A stretch of DNA of 64,000 bases. Origin: Pocillopora damicornis (Eukaryota). The DNA lies in contig NW_020846779.1 in the NCBI RefSeq assembly GCF_003704095.1, forward strand, positions 248,001-312,000, written 5' to 3'. The notes below the pieces were generated by a model that saw nothing but the letters and a program-made list of their open reading frames with translations, was not told the DNA's origin and ran no database searches. Positions 2,795 to 60,100 of this stretch are shown here, piece by piece. Positions within the stretch are counted from its first letter, which is position 1. Each line of letters opens with the position of its first letter. The position numbers were made by a program, and so were the translations under genes.

Positions 2795-5700
2795 CAATTA
2801 TCGTATCTCTCGACAGCCATCGGCTTGGCGCAAGGCGTCGAACAAACCTTAATTAAAAAAACTGATATTAAAATAAAATAATAAAAAAAATCACGGGCAT
2901 AAATGTTTCCATTGAATTATACTTACCGCCATACTGTGGGCAGCAATCTGATCTGATCACTGACTATAAGTGAGCACCGATCGTGCCTAAATCTCTGCCG
3001 GCAAAAAGGATAACCTGGAAGCACAGGTAACCCAAGTTGTATACACGCAAATGCTGCAAAGCTGCGCATTATGACGCCTCTAACTTCCGCTCACTAATTA
3101 ATGACCATTAAGCGCGTCAAAACGTCATAAGTAGCGTCAGATAACTTATGCTCGCAAATTCGAACATCATGCTTTTGAGTGTAAAAGAAGAGCAGAAGAA
3201 CATTTCTGTCTTTTCAACTCCAAATGTATAATAGAGAAAAAGATTAAACCATAAAAAACAGTCAATAATTGTAAAATGAATGCCCAGGGGTGTCATATTT
3301 GTCTCGTTTCAGTAGCGGTCTTCTTCTGATCTACCTCACGGGGCAATTCAATTATCGTATCTCTCGACAGCCATCGACTTGGCGTAAGGCCTCGTGGAAA
3401 CCTTAGTTTAAAAAACTGAAATAAAAATAAAATAATACTAAAAAAATCACGGGCATAGACGTTTCCAATGAATTATACTTACCGCCATACTGTGGGCAGC
3501 AATCTGATCTGATCACTGATTATAAGTGAGCACCGATCGTGCTTAAATATCTGCCGGCAAAAAGGATAACCTAGAAGCACAGGTAACCCAAGTTGTATAC
3601 ATGCAAATGCTGCTAAGTTGCGCATTATGACACCTCTAACTTCCGCTCACTTATTAATGACCATTAAGCGCGTCAAAACGTCATAAGTAGCGTCAGATAA
3701 CTTATGCTCGCAAATTCGAGCATCATGTTTTGAGTGTAAAAGAAGAACATAAGAACATTTCTGTCTTTTCAACTCCAAATGTATAATAGAGAAAGAGATG
3801 TAATCGTAAATTTGCCAAAATTGTAGCCGTCAGCCGTAAAAGCCATCACTCATCCATTTAAACGCTCTGTTGACGAAAACAGTTACTGACTGCTTAGAAA
3901 CACTATATTTTTTATATCTTATTGGACGTTTGGTGTGTAGTAACGCTGAGTGCTTTTATGAGCTGTCCAGTATTTTGACAAACCTAAAGATATTATCCGC
4001 ATTCTTTATTAAGATGTAAAAGCGAACCAGATAAAGAGGCGTAGCAAGCCCACCTTACTGGTTAAACAAGCTTTTTTTTTTTAACAGTGCAAAATAAGCA
4101 ATTATTTGAAAATTGCGAATTAACTGTATAGAGGTAACAATTATTTATATGCCGATTGACTGAGATATAGGGCATTTCTCATTGATTTCGGTAATTGCCC
4201 CGTGCAATAACCAAATTTAGAGACATTAAACGAAACCGTGAGCAAAACGAAACAAAACAAGCGAAACCAACGAAACGACCAGAACGAAACGATCGAAACG
4301 AAACAAAGCTACCGACCAAACAAAACGACCGAAACGACCAACAATAATATATAAAACAGTCAATAATAATAAAGTGAATGCCCAGGGGTGTCATATTTGT
4401 CTCGTTCGATAGTGGTCTTCTCCTGATTTACCTCACAGACAATTCAATTATCGTATCTCTCGACAGCCATCGGTTTGGCGTAAGGCGTCGAGGAAACCTT
4501 AGTTTAAAAAACTGAATTAAAAATAAAATAATAAAAAAATCACGGGCATAGACGTTTCCAATGAATTATACTTACCGCCATACTGTGGGCAGCAATCTGA
4601 TCTGATCACTGATCATAAGTGAGCACTGATCGTGCCTAAATATCTGCCGACAAAAAGGATAACCTAGAAGCACAGGTAACCCAAGTTGTATATATGCAAA
4701 TGCTAAGTTGCGCAATATGACACCTCTAACTTCCGTTCACCTATTACTGACCTTCAAGCGCGTCAAAACGTCATAAATAGCGTCAGATAACTTATGCTCG
4801 CAAATTCGAGCATCATGCTTTTGAGTGTCATCCCTTGAACCATGGCATTATAGCGAAAATTATCCTCAAAATTTTTTACAATGCCAATTCAATTATATAT
4901 GATAATAGCCGTTAAGATGCCCCAACTTACCCCCCCTATTCCTACTACTATCAGGTGAAACTTGCTAAGAATAACTGGAAATAATTATTAAAGAACAAGC
5001 GAGAAAAACAAGGTCACTCTTGACATTTATCAGGCTGCAGAATTTATCTCTTGTTAGACGGCAACATCGAGGGAAATTCTAGGAGGTTTAGTCATTATGT
5101 CAGCATTACGTTCGATGCTCTGACTGTAGCATTCGAAGTTTCAACATCCCCCCCTGAGCAACCCCTGGGTATTTGAACTTTTGAAGATTGGCTTGTCCAA
5201 ATTCCTGACCCTACCCCCCATCAGGTCAAAAATTGTGTTTAGATGCACCGCTCAGATTTTTCATAAAACGAAAATCCAGTGGCCGTAACTTTCTACACAT
5301 TGAAAAAGCCTTACTGACCTTTTCCCTTTTCTTCGCAGTCATTCGCTTGTGAAAGTGAATTGTTTACCTTTAAACATCCCCATGTTAAAAAGATATAACA
5401 CTTGTATTCCGTTGGAAAGATTTGACACTTATGGTTCAAATTCTCCATTCCAGCCAGCCAAGGTCTAAATCCCCCCCCCTCCGGTATGGACGACGATCAA
5501 ATGCCCGTGGGTCACCAGTGGGGGAGGGGATGTTGAAGCTTCGAAATGATCGGCACATCATGTCCAAAATTATGTTGGTTACTTTTTCCGACCATGGTAA
5601 TGAACGGAACTAATCGATCGTGGAAACGTTGCGCAATTATCCAAGTCGTTGACATAATATTACAGTATATTAAACGATGAAAAAAAATTCCTTGCAGGAT

Positions 5701-10109: not shown

Positions 10110-13100
10110 CTAGTATACACATGTAGTGTCCAGGTCCCACTCTGCTTGATAACAACTGGCTGAGGGGTTGACAAAGTGCTGTTGAGGAAAGGGTGGCTTG
10201 GGATATGATTCTTTTGGCATAGGAAGAAGCTGCTGAGGTGCGTGCGGGCTCACAGGCTTTGGCTCCCGACACTCTGGCTTGATGTAAGGTTTCTGTGAAT
10301 CAGGAAATGCCATGCTGAAGAGGGCCTCAGGACTGCACACAAATTTGTAGACATAACGTTCGCCAGCTACTTTCTGCATAATTCCTTTCTCGTAGTAATA
10401 ACGAAGAGAACGGCTCAGTTTGTCGTAGTTCATGGCAGGACGGTTTTTCTGAATTCCCCATCGACGAGCTACTTCTTCAGGGTCAATGAGTTTGAACTCC
10501 ATGCCACGCCCCGTCCAAGCGATAAACGAGGAACATTCAGGCTCGTCCAAAAGAGCCACAAGGAACTGCCACAGTTGCAATGAACCCCGTCTTTGGAAGG
10601 CCCTGGGTTCTGGATATGTGACACCGTTCGGAACTTTAAACTCAGGACCTATGTTTTGCAAAAGAACGGCACGTTTTAATAACTTACACATCCATTTTAG
10701 ACTTTACGGTGACCTTACTGGTGATTTAAAGAATGACATCCAAAGGGAGATATTCATACAATCAGTCGTATTTTTCTTGGCAAGTTAAACATAAACATTA
10801 CTTTTGGAAAATTCATTGTTGCATGTAAAAGTATAGAAATTTAATAGATCATTCATGAATCATTCATACACAGTTAGCTGCTAATGTCAAAGTGATTCTG
10901 TTTTAGATATTACTCGGAAAAACAGTCTGGACCAGAAAATAAGAAAAAAAAACACAATTGCATTCGCAATGAGGCCAGATGTGCAGGAAATCTTTAGGAC
11001 TATTGACAACTTTCGAACCAAACCAATACACCATTTTATGAATCAAAAAAGCAGCGAGGGCTATCTTGGTGGGTGAAAAGCAAATTTTGTCTGAAGTCGC
11101 AATAATTGAATTACATGTTTTTCAGGAAGGCAAGATGTCCACTTCATAAACAGGGAAAATTTGATTGTGAATATTTTTAGTTACTTAGGTTCGAAACAGC
11201 AATGAATAAATCTTTAAAGCACATTTAATTGTATACTGCCTTTTTCACCTTTCGAAGTTATAAGTAACCTTTCAAAACTAAAAGAATACGCTGTTCCGTT
11301 TGTTTTTCCACGAGAAGAAATGCCGAGTGTATCAAATACCTAAAAGCCGTTTCTAGGAGCGCTCTGCAACAATTTTTAAACGTGGTTTAAATTTCGTCTC
11401 CTTTCATGCTTCGTTTTTTCATTTTCCCTAATTTTCACCGTGTGTTTAAGGCCATGCCTATTGAAAAGTTTTTTTTTGATTCCTAACCGAAGAATAGAAG
11501 AATTATTTTCCCATTTTGCTGAGTGTATTCAAATTAGACTGCTCTCGTAAAATGCTACTCTTTACAGCTGTTACGCATACTAAATAGTTCAAAATAACCG
11601 AGCAGAGAAAAGCCATGTGTGGGGAGCGTATTAGCCAGAGCTTATCATTGAAAGAATACGATGAAACTTGATTAATTGCAAGAAAACACCATTAGCTGCA
11701 CTTTGACAAAGCGCCCAGAGATATGAAATGGCTCTTCTAACTTTCCATTGATATTCAAAACACTTTTAGTCGATTAAGAAACTTCAGCGCAGCAGATGAC
11801 GCATTTGTAAGTCCGAAGGTTGCTCTGTTTGCATAATGTAGTTTGGCCGTGATCTTTGCGATAGAGACATCCCATGGGTTTTTACGAGCAATAGTTTTCA
11901 TTTGAAATTGCTGTCTTCGCGTGTGGCTTAATTTGATGTTCGGTGGGTGATCTCTGCAAAAACGTTTGCATTTCACGTTTTAATTAAGTTACAAAACGAA
12001 AATAACAAATAAAAGATCGAAATTAATCTTGCGACGTGCAAAGTTCCCTTAACAGAATAGAAATCAAACGATTTTGACATTTGTCAAAGATTCTGAAAAG
12101 TTTGGCGTCATCATGTTTGGTTTTCCTAAAAGTAATTTATCTTGTAATTATTCAAAAAAGGAGAGCAAAGAAGCAATACTTTCTGGAAAAAAGGTAAAAA
12201 ATGATTAGACCGACATTGTGTTTCCCACTGGTTTTTGAACAAAACCGTATTCACGCGGACTTAGTTGGTTCTGTGCTCATTGTCTATTTTAGCTGTTTCA
12301 AGTGGCGCTAACATCCGGGTCTTTCAAACACTCCTCGCACACCCATTTTGAATCGAGGCATAGATCTCGTTGGAAAAGTTGCGTTTTTGCCTAATATTTA
12401 TGTCTTAATCAGCAAGAAAACTTCCTGAAATTAATTGATGATATAGAATCGAAAAGGAGGTGAATTTTCCACCAATTTAAGCAATTACACGTTAGCGGAT
12501 GGTTTCGTTTTCTTAAGGCAAGATACGAATAAAAAAATTGCTTGGCAAGAATAATGGTTAAGTAAAGATTACACTGTAGCTTTTATCCGGAAAACGGTTT
12601 ACTTCGTGTAATGACTAGGTAATGGCAAAGTGTTTGATAAATATCTCAACGGTGTTCATGTGTCGCATTGAATATTTCTTGGGTGCCTTGCTGCTTTACG
12701 AATGTAATCAAAATAAGTCTGGTAATTAGTGCAATACAGAGATAGCGCGCACGCTTTTAGCGCAAAATTCATCTCATCAGTTATCGAGCTAGAATTTGCG
12801 ATTTTGGAGCACTTTGTATCCGTTCGTTAAAAAATATGTCCAGAAAGAAAATCAACATTTCTATAAATCCTCAGAAAACGAGAAAGTTCTATAGAGCTAG
12901 ATATGATATCCAATAGGTTTAATTTTGACCAAATAAAGCAGGTGCAATGAAAAATTTAATGCTTTTTTCCATGGTCTTCTTTCACATCGGTTTATTATCG
13001 AGAAATAGAAAATCTTGTAAAGGAAACCCCCTCTGTGATACGCGTAATACCTTGATCGTTTGCAAACTAGAGCGGTGTTGTATAAATCATATTAATTTAC

Positions 13101-28209: not shown

Positions 28210-29230
28210 TTCGAATACAAAGAACAGGATGCTTCATCTTTCTATAGTTATATCAACATCCAGCACCCCAACATTAAGATTACTATGGAGAGGGAAGAAA
28301 ACCACCAGCTCCCCTTCTTAATTGTTCCTTTAAAAGACAATAGAAATCAGGGCTTTATCACCTCGGTGTTTCACAAGAAGACTCCTACACTGGTCTTCTC
28401 ACTGAGTTTTACAGTTTTGTACCTTTCAGTTACAAATCAGGATTAGAACGCACTCTTGTAGACCGAACATTTAAATTAATAATATATGGGCTGGCTTTCA
28501 CCTTGACGTAAATAACTTTACTCATCGAGGATGTTGTAAGAAAATTTCTTAACAATAACTTCATGTCCGATTCTTCTCAGAGTGCTGCTCGCAAGGAAAA
28601 TTGTTTTTATTTGAAATTACCGTACATCGGTCCTTTTTCCATCACAACGCAACGCAGAATTAAGAAATTAGTTAGCACATTTTGCAGCGACCTTGACATT
28701 AAGTTGGTGTTCACCCCGTTTAAAATTAAGAGTTGGTTTGGGGTCAAGGATCCTATCCCTGCGGGTTTACGATTGCGAGTTATTTATAAGTTTTCATATG
28801 TAGGCTGTACTGCCTGTTAGTTGGTGAAACCAACAATCACGTCGCAGTTCGCATCCGCAAACATCTCTCTTCTGACAAACATTCCCACATCTTTCAGCAC
28901 CTGAGAGGTTCTGAAAATTGTCGCTCCCTTTGTTCAGAAGATTGTTTTAAAATTCTGGACTCTGCTTCCACAAGCTTCCAATTGAAAATTAAGGAAGCCA
29001 TGCACATCCTCTGGGAGCAGCCGTCTTTAAATTCCCAGGTCAAACATCTTAATTTATCCCTTTCATACTAATTAGTCTCCCTAATTAGCTTAAGTAGTTT
29101 CACTTTTTTGTTTTTTTAATTATTCTTGTTAACATCTCACTTTGCTATACTATTTATTGTATAATTTCATTTATTTCTCATTATACAACTGACGATGGAT
29201 GATGTTTCATCCGAAACATGTTTTGTCTTC
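28210..29230 (+). mobile_element. Decayed, 5'-truncated Penelope-like retroelement (RT C-terminus plus GIY-YIG endonuclease)
   Basis: RT thumb region YINIQHPNIKITMEREENHQLPFL, then LKLPYIG and VKDPIP..LRVIYKFSYVGC. After a 1-bp frameshift at ~28819 the frame continues VGETNNHVAVRIRKHL..SHIFQHL..CFKILDSA..LKIKEAMHILWEQPSLN to a stop at 29069-29071. Several frameshifts are present. Confidence 0.9.
29185..29226 (+). ncRNA. Minimal type I hammerhead ribozyme motif of the Penelope-like element
   Basis: ACAA-CTGACGA-T-GGATGA(TGTT)TCATCC-GAAA-CATG-T-T-TTGT. This gives the conserved CUGANGA/GAAA core, a 6-bp stem II, a palindromic stem III (AAACATGTTT) and a 4-bp stem I. Confidence 0.75.
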
Positions 29231-29319
29231 ATTAAAAAATATAAAAAAAATAAACTTCAAAAGCATCGTGTGGTTCATCAAAGCGATATCTTACTTCGAG
29301 CTGCAACGAAGCCTTATCG

Positions 29320-29460
29320 TCATTAATATTATTATTATTATTTTTATGATTACAATTGTTATTATTTTCAATATCATTATCATCATTACTGAGAATCATT
29401 TTGATTGTCATTGTCAGTATCATTAGTATTATTATCATTACCGTTATTATTATTATCACT
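29320..29460. repeat. Degenerate (ATT/ATC)n microsatellite
   Basis: Trinucleotide low-complexity tract; it explains the poly-I and poly-N ORFs in the track. Confidence 0.9.
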
Positions 29461-32400
29461 TTGAACCTTTTTTCTTTAGCAGCACCACTAAAATCATTCA
29501 ATGAGAAAAGATAAATTGGAAAGGAACGAGAAAAATTCGTGGGAGGTCCAAGAAAAGATTATCAGTCTCATCAGTCTGTCTCAAGTATGTCCAAAGTGGA
29601 GGACGGTATTGATACTGAGTCAAACACTTCAAAGGGATTGCGTCAACGTCTTGTCAAACCTTTAAGCCCTTTTTTCTAAGTGGATAGTTTACAATCCGAG
29701 TCAGCGTACTCCATCTTTGATCACGCTTGTTCTGTCTTGGTTTGCTCTTTTTCTTGTGCTTTTTCTTTTTTCGCTAATCCACTGGATACTTTGTAGTTAA
29801 AAAAAAAAGTGCCTGAACTTAACGTTATTTTAAATGACGCAATAAGCGACCGATGAATTTGACGTTGATCGTTAAGTGCTTTAAGTGCGGCTAACCTGAT
29901 CCTTAAAGAAGGACGAGAATAGCATGACAGACAATGACGAGGGAGCAATATTCAACGAGATAACACCACGTCGCGGACGAGGGGGGTCTTCTTTCATACG
30001 AGCTAGACAGATAAGGACCGATTTTAGTCCGAAACGGGTTTCAATTTAGACCTCTATGGTTTTAAAATGGGTTTGGTATCAAGGGAACCACCCTCTCTTC
30101 ATTTCCACTGGAATTGATAAGAGAATAAAGGAACAGAGAAAGAGACTTCAACAAAAATGTTACGTGCGATCTTCTGATGCATTTTACTATATCTTAACCT
30201 TGGCACTGATGCGAAACTCTGGTGCGCAATTACTGTTGAAAACCACCGGGAAACGTCACTCATGTAATATGCTAAGCGGTTTCGCAAACACGAACACGGC
30301 AATTAAATGTAGTCAAGGATTACAAAACTTTTCAATTAACTGACTGAAGGTCAAAACAATTCAGTATGTTACCCATGAACTTATTTCGAAAGTTACGTTC
30401 AGAAACGAATACTGATAAGCAGCCAGGTGTGGAAACAGGTGTAGAAAGTGACTTTTAATGAGGTACAATGATGGGTACCCTGCTCCCCTCCCCTCGGAGC
30501 CACGAACTCCTTGTCCGCAAAGGGACAACGAAGGCGAGCGCGGATTTAGAGGTCAGATCTTTTCGAAACCTCAGGCCTCTATTATTCGAAGAGCTGTCTG
30601 CGATGATCCAAGATAAATAGCCAGGCGAGGTTTTTAATATATTTTCTCCAAAACCGTACATAAGGCTTGGGTTTTTTAGCAAGGGTAAAACTGAAAGACT
30701 AGTCGTCACTGAAAATAGAACTGAGCAGTGATACTCTCCGCTGAGCCATCAGAACTACATGAAAATGATATATATCCGTGAAAGAAAAAAAAAATTAAAG
30801 AAAGAAAGAAAGATAGAAAACAGGTTGTGGACGAATGTAACAAGTAAGTAAAAAGCCATGCAAAGATAATCGAGATAAATTTACGCCCACAGTGGCTGCA
30901 TCTACACTTCAGTGTGCAACTTTGAAACATTCAATAGCTACCCGACTGAGGTACAATTCATATTCTAGTAATGTTGGAGAATTCTAAGGAAGCCTCATCG
31001 AAGCCCGTTGATATGATGATGTACCGTGAGACATACTTTGCAAAGGGAGGTTGCAAGGTAATTGAAAAGAAGTAGCGTTTGACCTCAGTAAGCAATTTTA
31101 TCTCTTATATCCAACATTTATTAGCGTGCACGGAGCAAATCAATCACCATATACACGTAAACAAAATTGGTGTTAAGAGCCACTTCTTTCACAAGCACTC
31201 CTAAAAAGGGTCTCTTCTACGGATGAAATATTTTCAACTTCACGGGGCAATTTTTAGGGAGAAAAATCTTTGCTGGGAACGTTGTAGAAAATGGTTGATG
31301 CTGAAGGTATTAGTTAGCAATTCTTTTAAGAAAGATACATTACTATCGGTTAGGAAACCAGAAATGGTTTCAGGTTTCAAGTGAAGCAATCGAACCTCCC
31401 CGGAACAAAGCACTTGTGATTGTACCTTTGATAGCTCTTAACAACATACTTGACGGGATATCGCTAATGGCTACGAACGCGGAAAGTCAAGTCAAATAAT
31501 TACGACGTGAGGGGAAAGAATTACGAACAGTTGAGAGAAGTTTGTACGACTGAAGTATTTAAAACATGTTCCACTGTTGTTTACTTTGAAATGCAAAACA
31601 TCACGTCTACGCGCGGTTCTGCAAGGGCGTATCTGTAACCGTGCCAAAATCTGCATTCAATGAGTACATAGCTGTAGTATTGAACATGTAACATTCTTCT
31701 GACAGTTTGTTAAAGTTGTCTGGTGACCAGCTGCTCTAATCATTGTGTTTTAAGAACGCCCGCCCCCGCCACGTGTCGTACAATAATGAGCCCTCTTAAA
31801 GAGAGCAGTGCCGTCACCTTGCGTTTACAGGGCTTAACAAATTTACCTTGCTAATCAAAAATGCATTCTTCATGTAAAACTTCAGCAAATTTAATGTCAA
31901 TTACTATGTTGTTAGTTGACTAGGAAATGCGTAAAAAGCTTTAGAAACAACGTCAGAGATCCGGTGGCTTGTGAAAGAGGCTAATCAAATTTAAAACAAA
32001 ACTTGCCTTAAGGCTAACTTGCCGAAGATCAATGAAACTCACTCGGATTTTGTTGTTCAAGAGGCTTAGTGTCCGCTCGAGTGAAAAAGACCCATTGTTT
32101 TCGTCTTTTAAGGGGTTGTCGTACGTTATTTCGGGCAACCAATCAAACGAAACGTCGCTGTGATTTATTTGTCCAACGTGTGTATTGTCCTTGAACAATA
32201 AGCTGATATTATTGCTTTGAATGAAAAAAGGCACAGACATTGATGAAAGAGCCATTGTTATTCTCTAATAAACTTTATTTATATATTGCGATCTAGGAAC
32301 TGTCTTACAGAATGTTCGGATCAAATGTACAACATGGTCTTGTCTATGCGCCTCAACAACCTAAGTATGACCATAAGAAGTGAACACGCCACTGGCTCTC

Positions 32401-33095
32401 CTTGGTTTAATTACTTAAGATTCTATAAGAACACATAGCTTATTTACATTTTCTAGTATTCAAGAGCCATGCTTCTAACGAAACGCTAACAATCTATCTT
32501 ACTTCTGTTATATATAATATATAAATTTTCTTTTTATGATCTGAAGACTCAATTGCTCACAACACAAAGTTTCGATCAAGCGGTTTGATAATAACGGACC
32601 GCCTTTTGCGAAGACATGACTAACAGTAGACTTGCATAACATGAGCAATTCCCTGGTCGAATATCTTTGATGAGACTTCGGGCAACTCGATGTTGTTGGT
32701 TAATGTTACAAGTTTTCAGTGTAGTATGGTTTGATGCGAATCGCCATGCGGTTGACACGTGTGCTCCGCTGTTAACACTTCTAACACAATTATCAGTCAA
32801 AAACTGTTGTAGCACTCGGCAATGTTGTACCAAATTGTGATGTAACCGGCTGTAGATAAATCGCAAGGTGCACAACAGGCAAGAAATTTATACAAAATAT
32901 AAACGCGTGCAACGGAAAGTATTGCACTTAGCTGTCGTGCTGACGTACCAGAGTTCATTCAATTTACAACTCACTGACACTTTGTACAACTGTATGTTAC
33001 ATTACGAAGCAATAGAGTGAAGGAATGTCTGTGCGGGAATGTCTTTTGACAGTTGCTCCACATTGTAGATTTTGTTTTGTTTTGAACAGAACTCG

Positions 33096-33832
33096 TCAAG
33101 GGTTCGTTTGGTTCTGTTTGTGTGTGTATCTCTTACACTTGCACGAGCGAACAACTCGTACCCGATACTTGAACTTGTTCCCGTCTATGCACACCACAGT
33201 CACCTTCTTAGTTTTAACTTCGTCCGGGACACAACGCCACTCTCTCTTACGACGACTGATGACTTTGGAATATTCCGGAAACCAGGGCAGCTCATCCATA
33301 GGCATGCACTGTCCATCGCAAATTAGGTCGCGGAATGGTCTTCTACTCGTGCAGCGGCCATTCGACACATACCTACGAATCCGGATTCCTTGACATCCAA
33401 GATTGAGAATGCCTAAGAAACAATACACATATGGTCAATAACAGACTTCCTTTGCACGCTGTCGACTCGTGGCACCACACACGCGTCCGGCCACTGACGA
33501 GTGTGAATGAAAATTTTCTGTACTGATCAATGGGTAAATAGCGCACAAGCGACGGATTCAAACAGTGTAAAAGTTTGTTAGAAGATGAATCATTTTGCTG
33601 CTAAATTACCTGCTGTTTGATGTGGCTTCTCTAATTCCAAGCCTGTTTCATCAGCAGAACTTTGAACCGCATTCGTTTCATTTGTAGCTGCTACACGAGG
33701 AATTGATTTTGCGGACGGTTCGTTCTGCCCATGTCCTCGCGCCTTTTGGCGAGCAATAACTCCATCCCAACACTTGCAGACGACAACGATTAGCAGTATG
33801 AAATTCCGTCGCCAACATCTCAATAAGATCAT
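33096..33832 (-). CDS. SOSTDC1: Sclerostin/SOSTDC1 (Wise)-like secreted cystine-knot protein, 2 exons, 179 aa
   Basis: Exon 1 33832-33610 (signal-peptide-like MILLRCWRRNFILLIVVVC..), phase-1 GT-AG intron, exon 2 33412-33096. Eight-Cys knot LGCQGIRIRRYVSNGRCTS..LICDGQC..EWRCVPD..VVC..VVRSCKCKRYTHKQNQT matches the SOST/SOSTDC1 pattern (EWRC, CKCKRYT, C-terminal N-x-S/T). AATAAA on the minus strand at ~32279-32274. Confidence 0.92.
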
Positions 33833-36800
33833 TATGCGTCGGGAATTTTTGTTCACAGTTATGAACGACTTTACAAGGAAGTTTAAGGTTAGGAAACAAA
33901 ACTTTCCGTGTGTGGTGCTTTGCTGTTCAACAACTGGGAGGCGAATGTCAATAACACGAGATCTGGCGCCACTTGACATGAGATGTGCATGGCTGACCAA
34001 TCGTAAAGCGTAGCTCCATAATAGCGCGCTCCCGCGAATGAACACAAATGACTTTGAAAATGAATCGGGTCAAACACAAAACACAAAGAGTTGTGTATTA
34101 TTAAGAATATAAAAACAACCCAAAACACACCCTGAACGTTCTTTCTTAAACTGTGAATAAAAGCGACGTGAAAACAGTTGTGAAAGTTTGTTTAGCGAAC
34201 AGCCACGTTCCTATTGGTGGTATGTAAATGAAGACTAAGTCTTGGTAAGCATCTTCCAGTATTCGTTTCCGGAGTCCTTTCATAATTTTATTGCACGCAT
34301 GCTATTGGCAAACAAAAGCGAATAAACATCATCAATGTACAAAACGCATTCGCGTCTAACGTTTTATAAGGATTATCTCGGAATTTTGAGGATCTGAAGA
34401 ACTGTGTTGAGGATGAAAAAAACTAACAGATCGAAGATTCTAGAAATTACCTTTTTATGTGACGCTTGTCGTGCGAATTAAGTGGTCTCACTGTCAGTAC
34501 GGTTACTCTACACACAAAAGCTCTGCATGTAGCCTACCTCCCGTGATTTGTCAGGAGGTGCTCTTTCTGCTAATTTCACAGGTTGTCACAGTCTTTTTCT
34601 TACACTATTTTCATGGAAAGCGACAAATCTTCTCCAATGAATGAAAATTGATCAATTTAGTAAGAAAAACAATATATTCTTCTATGTGCTGTGGCTGATA
34701 TCAACTCTCAAACAGATCTTAGAGATAGAACTAAGTGTTGAGACGCCCCTAAATACAGGCCGCTTGTTTCACGCGGTTGTTATCTTTGGATAGTACTGCT
34801 CTAATAGGTTTGCCGTGAATTTTCGTACTCCAGTGTTTGGATTTAAATCAGGTCAGTCCTTTCTGCTTTCGTCTTCTATTTGCGTTACTATTTTAAGACC
34901 AAAGTGAGTTGGCATGTCTTTTGTAAAACAAGAACTCGTTTCGATGTACCAATATATATCAATTGGTCGTGCTATTAAACCACTCATAGTATCGTTATCT
35001 TTACGTATTTGCAGGGAAATGCTTATCACGCTGTACAAACTTTACCGCTATGCGTTTGAAGGAGTAAAACCGCTTGATAATAGTGTACTTGCCAATAACT
35101 TGAGGCACTTTTTGCTCACGTCACGGAAATAAAGAACTATAATTACTTTCGAGTGTTCCAATTCCGGTTATGTTTGGATGAGTTCCCTAATTTCTCTTCG
35201 TAAAAGATCTGCTTCGCTCTTGATGTTGGTTAAAACGTCAGAACCCTAGCTCTTCTCAATAATTCCCTGATATTTCTGTGCGCAATCATCACACACATGC
35301 CACAAGCTATATCAAACACTATGAAACGTGTCGCTCATTTTAAAATAATTTTATAGTACGCATATTAATTGTTTACGAAGGAAACTCGGGACAGCAGTTG
35401 ATTTCAGGAGTTCTACATCAGAAGATTAAGACATACGCGATTGTGACCGGGAGAGCATGCAACCCAGGGAATAATTTCTTTACTGGTTTTTCCCGATGGG
35501 TAGCTAAATGGGTAGCTAAATAAAAAGTAAAATAGGGAAAAAATGAATAAATAGATAGCTGAATGACTAAATAAATATATTAAATCAATGCACTAATTAA
35601 ATAAATAAATGAAGAAATAGGTTAATTAATTAAAGAGGAAGTTGGTCGGTGAATATGTAAATAGTTCAAGCGTTGATGACATACGTGTAAATCAGGAAAA
35701 ATAATTTAAAAAAAAATACACATATAGCTTGACAAGGCTTGATGATCACTCGATCACTCAGAGTATTTGACCTCAATACAAAACTGGTAAACATGATATT
35801 GAAACCGGTGAAACAAATGCATCAATAACGTAGCGTATTGAATTAGAGAATCGAAAAAGTTGTCCTTTTAAACTATAAAAAGAACATGTTTTTTTCATAA
35901 AAAATCACAAAACTTGAATCATAGAAGTGGTTACTGTCAGAGACAAGATTGTCTCTCGAAGAGATATGAAGGGCCTATTTGTTCGCGTAAAGAAATAGAT
36001 GAAGGAATTTAGTCGTCTATCAATCTCACCAGAAAAAATGGTCTATATTTGTTTGGTTAAATTTCCCTGGTGTTTTAATGTCGCTGTGAAAACTAAAGAT
36101 GAATCTTCCTTTTTTCTTTTTTAGTTTTCTTAACAAATGCGCGTCTTGTGTTGCTATTACGTCTTCTCTTTGTCCATTGGACTGTCAAACATTCTCTGTA
36201 CATTTTCTCTGATTCAAGTTAAAATTATTGTTATACAATGATACTCCTGAATGCCACCACGTGGCCAAAAATAAATCTCAAAGTTAGCGACACAATCAGG
36301 AATCAATAGGTCTGACTTTAACCAATCTGGTTCCTCATGTCATAATTGGGTACAATGTATGTAACGAAGCATGTGTTAACCCAGTTTTATTTTATCTTTT
36401 TAATTTTTAAGCATGGGCCCATAACATGGGCCTGTAAAGGCGAGTTTGGATTTCGAAATACCCTCAGGTTCAAGGTATTTTCTACGGCTAACTTAACGAA
36501 AACAGATATTATTCTACGCTGGAGGTCTTTTTGTGAATTGAATTAGCCCCAACGACTCGAATAATTTATTTACCCTTTAAACCTTAACATCAGTAAGCGT
36601 ATTCTCAATACCGTCCTCCACACATATCCAAAAGTGCAGTTAAGGAGAATTTGTTTTTGAAACAATACAGAGCTTCTTTAGTTGTTGATCATTCCATTGC
36701 TCTTGCGACGTTCATGAGCGATTCAGGGACGATGTTGTAAGAAGAAATTCGATGCTGGTCACCCATGTGGATTTTACTTTCTATGTCCTGAAGCTCGCAT

Positions 36801-37737: not shown

Positions 37738-52887
<15,150 letters not shown>

Positions 52888-57101: not shown

Positions 57102-60100
57102 ATGTGTCGTCCAAGAGTTACTGCAGTCTTGCTCATGTTCATTCCTTGTTTGGTTTTCTCCGCGGAGATTCCGAATATCTTGCCGGGTGATGTTGCTCCT
57201 TCATTTGTTCTTCAAGCAAAGGAAGTAATTCATGGTACCGACGTACTTCTCAGATATGGAGGCAACGATTCCAACATCCAAGGACCCATTGTGTTCCTCG
57301 CGTATACCGACCGCTCAGGATTCTTAGATCGTCTTCTATCCGACCCAGATTGCTTCAAGACTCTGATGGAGAACTCCCCTGACAATACGAATTACGTGTT
57401 TCTTTTTTATGCGACTTCTTCATCTTCGGTCAAAGATGCTGCTGACCAGCTCGCTCGGAGATTTAAAGAAGCAATGTATAACTACTTTTTTCGGTAAGTC
57501 CTATGTCCCTCAGAATTGCTTTTCATTCTCGCGTTAATTAACTACATTGAGATTGTTGTGACCCGAATGAGTTCCGAAATACAAAAGCAGGCTTCTTCAA
57601 GATAGCGATACTAGAGTATTGTGACCCGAAAGAGTTCCGAAATACACGAGCAGGCCTCTTCACAACAGTGATACTAGCTAAGAAATTGCAACATCTTGGC
57701 CGACAAGGACCATTTTTACCTAAGGTGCAATATTTTGGAAAATTAACCCAAGTTTCGTGATCCGGAAGTCACGAATTTCACTTCCTTTCGCTAAACCCGA
57801 GCGGAAATGTTTTTCGCCATGAACACAATGCTGAACGACACTGATACAATCGGAAAGAGGCGCTGAAATTGAGGTTCAGGCAATCTTGATTTTCCGTTTG
57901 TTGACTTCTTTACCTCGGAGGGTCCTGACTTTTTACAACAGTGAGATCAATCCCTATATACATGCCGGCCAAGAGTGAGGTTTATTGGATTAGTAACTCT
58001 GGGATGCACTCATGTATTCATTGAATATAGTGTTGGCCACCCTCATGAAATGAAATAAACATCTGTCACTCTTCAATTCTATTTCATTAAGAGCACTACC
58101 ATCTTGGGTCCGCGGCAGCTGTGAACCTTGCTCCGGGTAAAGGATTCTTAGAACACTTTTGGCAAAAAGCCACCAGCGTAGATTTGCTGTCCAAAGAAAA
58201 CTGAAACCCTTGATATATTAGTTAGTAACACAACATAAACAAAAGGAACTTGAAATAGCACGTCCCAAAAATTATCAAAGTTTACTGCTTACATTACAAC
58301 TGTAAGAGCAGCTGAAACCATTTACTATAGTAATTAATAATATACACGAAAAAATTACGCGGGTCTGATTAGCTGAAAACGAGTGCATTTTTCATGTAAC
58401 ACAAGTGCAACTTACAAATAGCGCGCGCGCTATTTGTAAGTTGCACTTGTCGGAGTATTTTAAGGGGGATCATATGGTTTTCAGGAGGAACAGATGTAGT
58501 TTAGGTAACAGAATATAAATGGGGGAAGATAGAAAATTGACTGCCTATTAACTGCTATTAAAGAAAGGGGGGGGCATATATATTGCATAATCTTATGAGG
58601 CGATCAGGTAAATTTCATCGTGACATAACCAAAGGAAACGTGTGAATCGGAATTTACAGGCTTCATTGCTGTTGCAGATCCAGCAGGTCCCTCGAATTCT
58701 CCCGGGTAAGGAGATTCCCTACCTTGACCGCGAGAATGGGAACATTACTGGATTTCAGTAACAACTGGCTTTCGCGGGTACATATTGCGACATTTCCTGT
58801 ATTTACTCTCGGAAATTGGATCCCGCGGGTGCTATCTCAGTGGTATTGTTCCGGGCACGGGTGTGGCTTTGCCCAGATCGTCATTGAAAATGATAAAGGT
58901 ACTGCCATACATTTAGAGAATTAGTTTAGACACAAGAAATCAACTGTCAGAGACGGACAATCGGGCAGTTTTCCTGAATGTAAGGATTCCATCAACTTAA
59001 CTTTAGTCTCAGACGGAAACGGAAGTTTGTTTCTCCAGACTTCTGCACTTTAGATTCTTGCTTTAAAATAATAATACTAACACTCTTACTCTTAAAAGTC
59101 GTCTTTATCGACAAAACCAATCTCTAGGTCAGGCTTCATGCACACCTATAAGAAACATGCTTCGTTCTGCCGGAAACTGTCAGAAAGGGAAGACAGTGTA
59201 TCTTAAAACTAAGACCAAGAGCTTCTTTTTCTGTTCCCTCTTCGTAAATAATTATAAATACCATTAGCTTTACTTGATCTATTTTGAATTTTCACATTAC
59301 GCATTTTGTACTAAAGTTGTGTCGAATACTATTAGGAAAGGACATTATCCTGTTTTGAGTACGGTCTTATTACCTTTCTTTGTTTAAATATCAATGCTAA
59401 TAACTTGTACTTTTTGACTTTAATGAAGGTGAAATCCACATGGTGTCAAAGCGTTTAGATGCACGCTATGATTGGCTGCCGTCTCCAGACACGCTCGCAA
59501 AATACGGACATTTGCAAGTGGCGTTTGTTGGAGATGCCTGCAATGCCAGCTCGTTTGTGAATCCTGTAAATGGTAAACTTGCCCTCGTTTCAATGGAGGG
59601 CGTCCAATGTTCATACTTTACAAAGGTTAGTTGCTGTTTTTTCCATCGCCCAGAATGCTATTGTCTTTCGCGACATGTACTTGCAGTGCCCATTTAATCA
59701 GCGGGCAGCATAATAATTTGCATATCCTGAACCAGTCGGTTGTGATTGGTCAGCAGGTAAAGCTTTGGGAATACATGAGTCTCTTTGCAGATTTCAGCTG
59801 CTGTCAATCAAACGGTTGGATGCGTAAAGTAAATCCCAAGGTGACATAAAGTGAACAATAGCAATAATGAACAATAGCCACGCTCTTAACAAAGCGTTTA
59901 GCAAATTCGTTTGCAGCGAATAGTCCATTTTACAGTTGTGTGCTTGGTTGCCAAGCCTTTGAACAGGAGTGNNNNNNNNNNNNNNNNNNNNNNNNNNNNN
60001 NNNNNNNNNNNNNNNNNNNNNNNNNNNNNNNNNNNNNNNNNNNNNNNNNNNNNNNNNNNNNNNNNNNNNNNAGCGCCAGCGTCTCAATGAAAGTCCCGGA

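Follow-up and report, generated by a model that had tools for sequence, protein, structure and literature searches.

We analyzed a window of 64,000 nucleotides from the genome of the coral Pocillopora damicornis (positions 248001-312000 of contig NW_020846779.1, which has 567,066 bases in an assembly of 234 Mb in 4,393 contigs) and found that it holds a compact block of three genes: cullin-1 (CUL1), a gene of the sclerostin/SOSTDC1 family, and an ETS gene of the PEA3 type, here called ETV. On the minus strand they lie in the order CUL1, sclerostin-like, ETV, all head to tail and within 43 kb. Each is adjacent to the next without a recognized gene between, and RNA was checked over 30465-36464 (positions are those of the window unless the contig is named). 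The same three families have been described as linked in other animals, and the coral linkage was probably inherited from the cnidarian-bilaterian ancestor. A sequence-only reading of this DNA had already singled out the ETS and sclerostin-like genes as immediate neighbors on the same strand, the sclerostin-like gene upstream and about 14 kb away. That pair stands, but cullin-1, the third member of the block, had been overlooked.

The sclerostin-like gene runs from 33832 down to 33096 on the minus strand, in two coding exons that encode 179 amino acids. Its open reading frame (ORF) at 33096-33428 (minus) matches the Pfam Sclerostin family (PF05463) at 89.9 bits, where the cut-off is 27; DAN (PF03045) scores 46.3 and Cys_knot 35.5. 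A profile search of the genome gave 15 DAN-type loci, only one of which, the locus described here, reaches PF05463. When the cystine-knot exon was compared with the PDB, sclerostin was the sole match (63.5 bits), and all eight cysteines align with those of human sclerostin chains 2k8p and 6l6r. By these sequence criteria, the gene is a sclerostin/SOSTDC1 family member. Its two-exon structure follows full-length anthozoan homologs placed by tblastn, from Desmophyllum (“Sclerostin domain-containing protein 1”), Actinia, Porites, and Nematostella. Coding exon 1 (33610..33832) carries the start codon, a putative hydrophobic leader seen by eye, and the N-terminal arm (tblastn, e.g., P0002 residues 1-76), and coding exon 2 (33096..33412) carries the entire eight-cysteine cystine-knot domain matched by PF05463. 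The intron between them (33413..33609; 197 nt, phase 1, GT..AG) appears in RNA as the joint 33411>33609 (cut +1, CT..AC on the plus strand). We mapped RNA contigs from four runs of three studies over 30465-36464, and this intron is spliced out in all four. The left ends of the contigs fall at 32239-32288 in three runs and at 31969 in one; the right ends fall at 34147-34172 in two runs and farther out in the other two. The spliced contigs indicate that the gene is expressed, with a 3' untranslated region (3'UTR) of about 0.85 kb.

Family membership need not carry the known function with it. In vertebrate sclerostin, an NxI motif in loop 2 binds LRP5/6. This motif is absent from the coral protein, where “wfpey” stands opposite human “pnaig” in the PDB alignment, and it is also absent from the anthozoan homologs P0002-P0018. 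Wnt antagonism via LRP5/6 should thus not be assumed for the coral protein. The loop at 33255-33310 is instead well conserved among anthozoans, with a sequence of the LPMDELPWFPEFSKI type, which hints at a different binding partner.

The ETV gene is also on the minus strand, from 19122 down to 10110, with eight coding exons and GT-AG boundaries at every intron. Its coding sequence of 1341 nt encodes 446 amino acids plus the stop. We built the model from exon-wise tblastn matches of two public proteins, P0020 and P0290, together with splice sites; the exons were left unjoined, and frames were followed by arithmetic and exon-wise translation. P0290 (“ETS translocation variant 1-like isoform X1”, 446 aa) has the same length and exon-wise sequence as our reading, and it served as the stand-in for the joined model in full-length domain scoring. 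The ORF at 10110-10691 (minus) matches Pfam Ets (PF00178) with an E-value of 3.1e-35. In a phmmer comparison of the ETS exon with all PDB chains, human ETV4 (209 bits), ETV1 (205), and ETV5 (199) lead, and the next group, ETS1, follows at 136. The coral ETS domain is identical to that of human ETV1 at 92 of 100 positions, counted in the PDB alignment. Full-length P0290 also matches ETS_PEA3_N (PF04621) at 59.6 bits (cut-off 30). An exon-by-exon profile search of the genome found no ETS_PEA3_N match, the domain being visible only in full-length public models. The genome has 17 loci of the ETS type; identity to the window's ETS domain is no higher than 66% for the remaining 16, compared with about 92% for human ETV1, so the window gene is the genome's sole PEA3-type gene. 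Judged by these similarities, it is a member of the PEA3 subfamily (ETV1/4/5). The family names given to both genes by the sequence-only reading are thus borne out.

The coding exons of ETV, all on the minus strand, can be placed as follows. Exon 1 (19069..19122) begins with the ATG at 19122, was located with P0020 and P0290, and has its GT donor after 19069; exon 2 (18885..18978) has an AG acceptor before 18978 and a GT donor after 18885. The acidic PEA3 activation motif is in exon 3 (18728..18775), within the ETS_PEA3_N match of P0290. Exons 4 (18492..18569), 5 (17421..17753), 6 (16639..16722), and 7 (13353..13463) were set by tblastn and splice sites. Exon 8 (10110..10648), which holds the ETS domain recognized by Pfam and the PDB as well as the C-terminal tail, is 100% identical to P0290 residues 268-446 and ends with the stop codon at 10110-10112. 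A shorter public isoform, P0295 (365 aa), has another first exon, within 17754-18490, and joins at exon 5. This implies a putative internal alternative promoter, from which the product would lack the acidic activation domain.

The third gene, CUL1, has a coding span of 37738..52887 on the minus strand. Exons matching Pfam Cullin and Cullin_Nedd8 span 37768-46647, and all nine PDB matches of the N-terminal exon (52555-52887) are Cullin-1 chains, with no other cullin at E≤0.001. The gene ends with the stop codon at 37738, and 3,905 nt separate it from the ATG of the sclerostin-like gene downstream. On the other side, the interval between the stop codon of the sclerostin-like gene and the start codon of ETV (19123..33095) measures 13,973 nt and contains no N; the only N runs in the window are at 1684-1742, 49741-49840, and 59972-60071. 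No gene is recognized in the interval, whose right end holds the sclerostin-like 3'UTR; with RNA checked from 30465 rightward, an unannotated transcript may exist in 19123-30464. We submitted 20 ORFs of at least 70 amino acids to Pfam, 15 inside the interval and five within or next to ETV and the sclerostin-like gene, and none reached a family cut-off; this set excluded the interval ORFs at 29199-29426 and 29232-29501. Rfam and tRNA scans of the interval gave no match. What the interval does contain is repeats: an interspersed repeat of about 350 nt (27563..27914), of which other scaffolds carry dozens of copies (78-90% identity), and a transposon-like fragment of about 1.1 kb (28222..29316), with copies at 80-89% identity on at least seven scaffolds and ORFs that have no Pfam match. 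In this repeat search against the genome, 39 of 1,794 first-look candidates were scored, and weaker repeats may exist.

The RNA contigs also revealed a plus-strand spliced transcript (34100-35468 plus 41700-41786) that begins close to the sclerostin-like gene's 5' end and extends into CUL1 in antisense orientation. In run X1 it has a joint at 34851>35381, with GT..AG on the plus strand. The loose ends at 34853 (run X11) and 35468 (X1) continue as a match to 41701-41729 with two differences and an AG acceptor before it. In X1, this antisense RNA is fused in a single contig with the minus-strand sclerostin-like mRNA.

The linkage of these three families is already, if briefly, in print. Roch and Sherwood (Genome Biol Evol 6:1466, 2014; PMC4079206) reported orthologs of the sclerostin-family gene (their SOSD) in Nematostella and Acropora. 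According to the synteny statement of that paper, Cul1 and ETV1 flank SOSD in the limpet and are close to it in amphioxus, while the three are on one chromosome in human and on one scaffold in Nematostella. The coral trio has the same three families and matches the description “flanking genes Cul1 and ETV1” (PMC4079206). There, the linkage is mentioned in passing, the subject of the study being glycoprotein hormones, and in the sections that we draw on, orientation, MEOX, the ETV4-SOST paralogon, and regulation go undiscussed. The Nematostella scaffold of PMC4079206 carries two Burs/GPH genes as well, whereas we found no Burs/GPH or other cystine-knot gene on the 567-kb coral scaffold. Beyond PMC4079206, we found no paper that joins CUL1, ETV, and SOST-family genes outside vertebrates; the figures or supplements of PMC4079206, PMC3861057, and PMC10719294 may hold exact positions. 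One hint comes from database records: an entry of 8,340,740 bases for the longest contig is given for both SOSTDC1 and ETV1 of Desmophyllum pertusum, suggesting that a second stony coral has the two genes on one scaffold. The sequence-only reading had proposed that the linkage predates the cnidarian-bilaterian split, and PMC4079206 supports this. In all, the coral trio is a clean, better-resolved further example of a published linkage.

Vertebrates offer the other comparison, for which we took human gene order from papers only. ETV1 and MEOX2 beside SOSTDC1 are paralogs of ETV4 and MEOX1 beside SOST, as set out in the parts of Collette et al. (2013; PMC3861057) used for paralogy. For the genes of the human SOST region, the corresponding parts of Martinez-Gil et al. 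(2021; PMC7825314) name DHX8, ETV4, MEOX1, SOST, DUSP3, and MPP3. According to the latter's 4C-seq data, contacts of the SOST promoter include ECR5, which lies 32 kb downstream, as well as enhancers in the space from MEOX1 to ETV4, and they extend to ETV4 and DHX8. Since ECR5 and the MEOX1-ETV4 enhancers are thus downstream of SOST, human SOST points towards ETV4, as its counterpart does in the coral (PMC7825314). The blocks SOST-MEOX1-ETV4 (17q21) and SOSTDC1-MEOX2-ETV1 (7p21) therefore resemble the coral locus in having SOST-family and PEA3 genes as neighbors with the 3' end of SOST facing ETV (PMC3861057, PMC7825314). For the human gene order cited in the sequence-only reading, PMC3861057 gives the paralogy, and PMC7825314 the genes of the region and the direction of SOST. 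The vertebrate blocks differ in that Meox sits inside them and SOST and ETV are hundreds of kilobases to megabases apart, whereas the coral genes are 14 kb apart and Mox is on another scaffold. Human CUL1 is also not adjacent to the SOST/ETV block, whereas coral CUL1 is. The strands of human ETV4 and ETV1 presumably also correspond to the orientation given in the sequence-only reading, and the chromosome 7 block has further genes between SOSTDC1 and ETV1.

Where, then, is Mox in the coral? We scanned the genome for homeodomains (147 matches, with 150 of 193 candidates scored) and found no Mox in the interval or on the 567-kb scaffold, as the sequence-only reading had stated for the space between the two genes. 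The scaffold has two homeodomains, neither Mox-like, and a Mox gene between the sclerostin-like gene and ETV was rejected on these grounds. One, located 38 kb to the left of the window, is a single-exon POU gene (contig 209191-210252, plus strand), which in the PDB matches POU6F1 best, at 99 bits, barely ahead of Pit-1 at 95.5. The other, 6 kb right of the window (contig 318000-318131, minus strand), is a divergent homeodomain split by an intron after position 46, with a Pfam score of 33.9 bits. Mox is elsewhere: C371, a scaffold of 278 kb, carries three homeodomains in tandem on the same strand, spaced by about 10 kb (C371:181346-203109). A short motif that we take to be characteristic of Mox, used as a lead only, matched two of the three. 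In a homolog search with the middle ORF (L022:5763-6086), 31 of the 38 named homologs among 120 rows listed were MOX/MEOX; the other seven were uninformative, and no other homeobox family was named among the matches listed. A protein cluster search with the C371 Mox-like ORF returned generic “homeodomain” clusters only. With this cluster present, Mox has not been lost from the coral genome. Of the two alternatives proposed earlier, later insertion of Mox or its loss from the block in the coral lineage, loss from the genome as a whole falls away, and a separate scaffold fits later insertion in vertebrates without proving it. Nematostella Mox, for comparison, is on chromosome 2 alongside SuperHox genes, in the account of Zimmermann et al. 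(2023; PMC10719294) that we draw on.

How might this arrangement have come about? We propose that CUL1, the SOST/SOSTDC1-family gene, and the PEA3-type ETS gene would have formed a three-gene, same-strand block in the cnidarian-bilaterian common ancestor, from which the coral inherited it. In vertebrates, the block would have been stretched and CUL1 shifted away along the chromosome. Meox would have been placed between SOST and ETV before the genome duplications, which would then have produced the SOST-MEOX1-ETV4 and SOSTDC1-MEOX2-ETV1 copies. The weakest step is the reason for keeping the genes together: the 14-kb interval may contain regulatory DNA that serves ETV, the sclerostin-like gene, or both, in which case a break there would separate a gene from its enhancers. 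Genomic regulatory blocks, conserved microsyntenies held by the enhancers of a developmental gene, offer a model, and PMC10719294 discusses the concept with regard to cnidarians. The coral locus is like them in that a developmental transcription factor gene has unrelated “bystander” genes beside it, in an order that is conserved; it differs in that such blocks are enhancer-held, while the coral locus is known here from its genes alone. The regulatory step is drawn by analogy from human bone cells, in which SOST promoter contacts reach up to the MEOX1-ETV4 interval, and given those 4C data, shared cis-regulation is plausible (PMC7825314). We lean slightly towards regulatory entanglement in the interval over neutral persistence, and put common ancestry and regulatory constraint together at a probability of roughly 0.45. 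Common ancestry of the linkage is by itself considerably more secure; what gives it weight is the third gene, CUL1, together with the literature report of the linkage in other phyla.

Several points weigh against this proposal. A few neighbor pairs per genome are expected to have linked human orthologs by chance. The genes identified in the flanks within 100 kb of the window, in a survey of long open frames, include none known to lie in human 7p21 or 17q21; on this weak negative, the block would be confined to three genes. The cross-phylum claim comes from the text of one paper, which gives “same scaffold”, not “adjacent”, for Nematostella (PMC4079206). As described in the parts of Zimmermann et al. 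(PMC10719294) that bear on this, cnidarians retain few microsyntenies of at least three genes and have their enhancers near genes, which speaks against long-range constraint as a rule among cnidarians; that paper doubts long-range regulation in cnidarians. In a bolder version of our proposal, CUL1-SOST-ETV would belong to a very small set of three-gene microsyntenies that cnidarians and bilaterians have in common, held by interleaved enhancers of the sclerostin-like gene, ETV, or both in the interval and by the antisense RNA through CUL1, with Meox inserted later. We think this unlikely. If it were true, insertion of Meox into a pre-existing regulatory landscape would explain why human SOST enhancers are found around MEOX1 and reach ETV4.

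A simpler account is that the linkage is ancestral yet unconstrained, and merely stayed unbroken in slowly rearranging genomes (anthozoans, limpet, amphioxus) without any shared regulation. The lineages in which linkage has been reported are all known for slow genome rearrangement, and the three genes are functionally unrelated, encoding a ubiquitin ligase scaffold, a secreted cystine-knot protein, and a transcription factor. Human CUL1, moreover, has moved by drift onto the opposite arm of chromosome 7. The text of PMC4079206 says only “same chromosome” in this case. The short enhancer-gene distances of cnidarians (PMC10719294) also favor this account. The same source cuts the other way, however: stretches of at least three orthologous genes are depleted in cnidarians (PMC10719294), which makes survival of the trio by drift alone unlikely, though not impossible, and contacts of the human SOST promoter with DNA up to ETV4 and DHX8 (PMC7825314) also argue for constraint. 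On balance, we regard unconstrained persistence as a serious contender, at somewhat less than even odds.

The remaining explanations do away with the ancestral linkage altogether. Should chance or an independent event in the coral lineage have brought the genes together, the arrangement would merely resemble the vertebrate order. The pair was found by scanning many windows, and of the tens of thousands of neighbor pairs in a genome, a handful would, by a rough estimate, have human orthologs within a few hundred kilobases through chance. Yet ETV and the sclerostin-like gene are both single-copy in the genome, and the prior chance that a single-copy gene has one specific direct neighbor is about 2 divided by the gene number. 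The other flank is, besides, the same third gene as in limpet, amphioxus, and Nematostella (PMC4079206), and the order and strand, with the 3' end of SOST facing ETV, agree with the human SOST orientation (PMC7825314). These agreements make coincidence improbable. Error is less probable still: one gene could be a generic DAN-family or ETS gene, or the pair could have been joined in assembly. The missing NxI motif and the empty exon-wise genome search for ETS_PEA3_N might be read in this way. The lead of Sclerostin over DAN, the single PF05463 locus among the DAN-type loci, the exclusively sclerostin PDB match, and the ETS_PEA3_N score of full-length P0290 argue against mis-assignment. As to assembly, there is no N between the genes, and runs X19-X22 (library type unrecorded, probably DNA) contain 97-100% of the sampled words of 30465-36464. 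Mis-assignment and assembly error are thus largely refuted.

The surroundings of the trio were surveyed through open frames of at least 100 amino acids in 200 kb of flanking sequence (contig 148-412 kb), ten of which were submitted to Pfam and one to the PDB. Besides the POU gene, we recognized a deoxynucleoside kinase (dNK), histones, an SLC34-type transporter, a DNMT3-like gene, an Ngly2-type PNGase, a short-chain dehydrogenase (SDR), and an array of ALK/LTK-type glycine-rich domains (GRD). The histone cluster (H1, H3, H4, H2A, and H2B, named by eye) is at contig 158500-164000, about 90 kb left of the window. The DNMT3-like gene (PWWP, ADD_DNMT3; contig 240091-247003, minus strand) is directly downstream of ETV. 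The tandem ALK/LTK glycine-rich-domain (PF12810) array, with at least eight genes or fragments on both strands, occupies contig 336000-401000. Within the window, two nearly identical ORFs of 71 amino acids (2527-2742 and 4179-4394, minus strand), about 1.65 kb apart, suggest a tandem duplicated unit downstream of ETV.

If the trio proves equally tight across phyla, it would be a compact and tractable case of unrelated genes kept together for more than 600 million years, and one that sits in a phylum said to lack long-range regulation. The coral also supplies an outgroup state for the regulatory region of human SOST, which is of medical importance: SOST and ETV without Mox between them.

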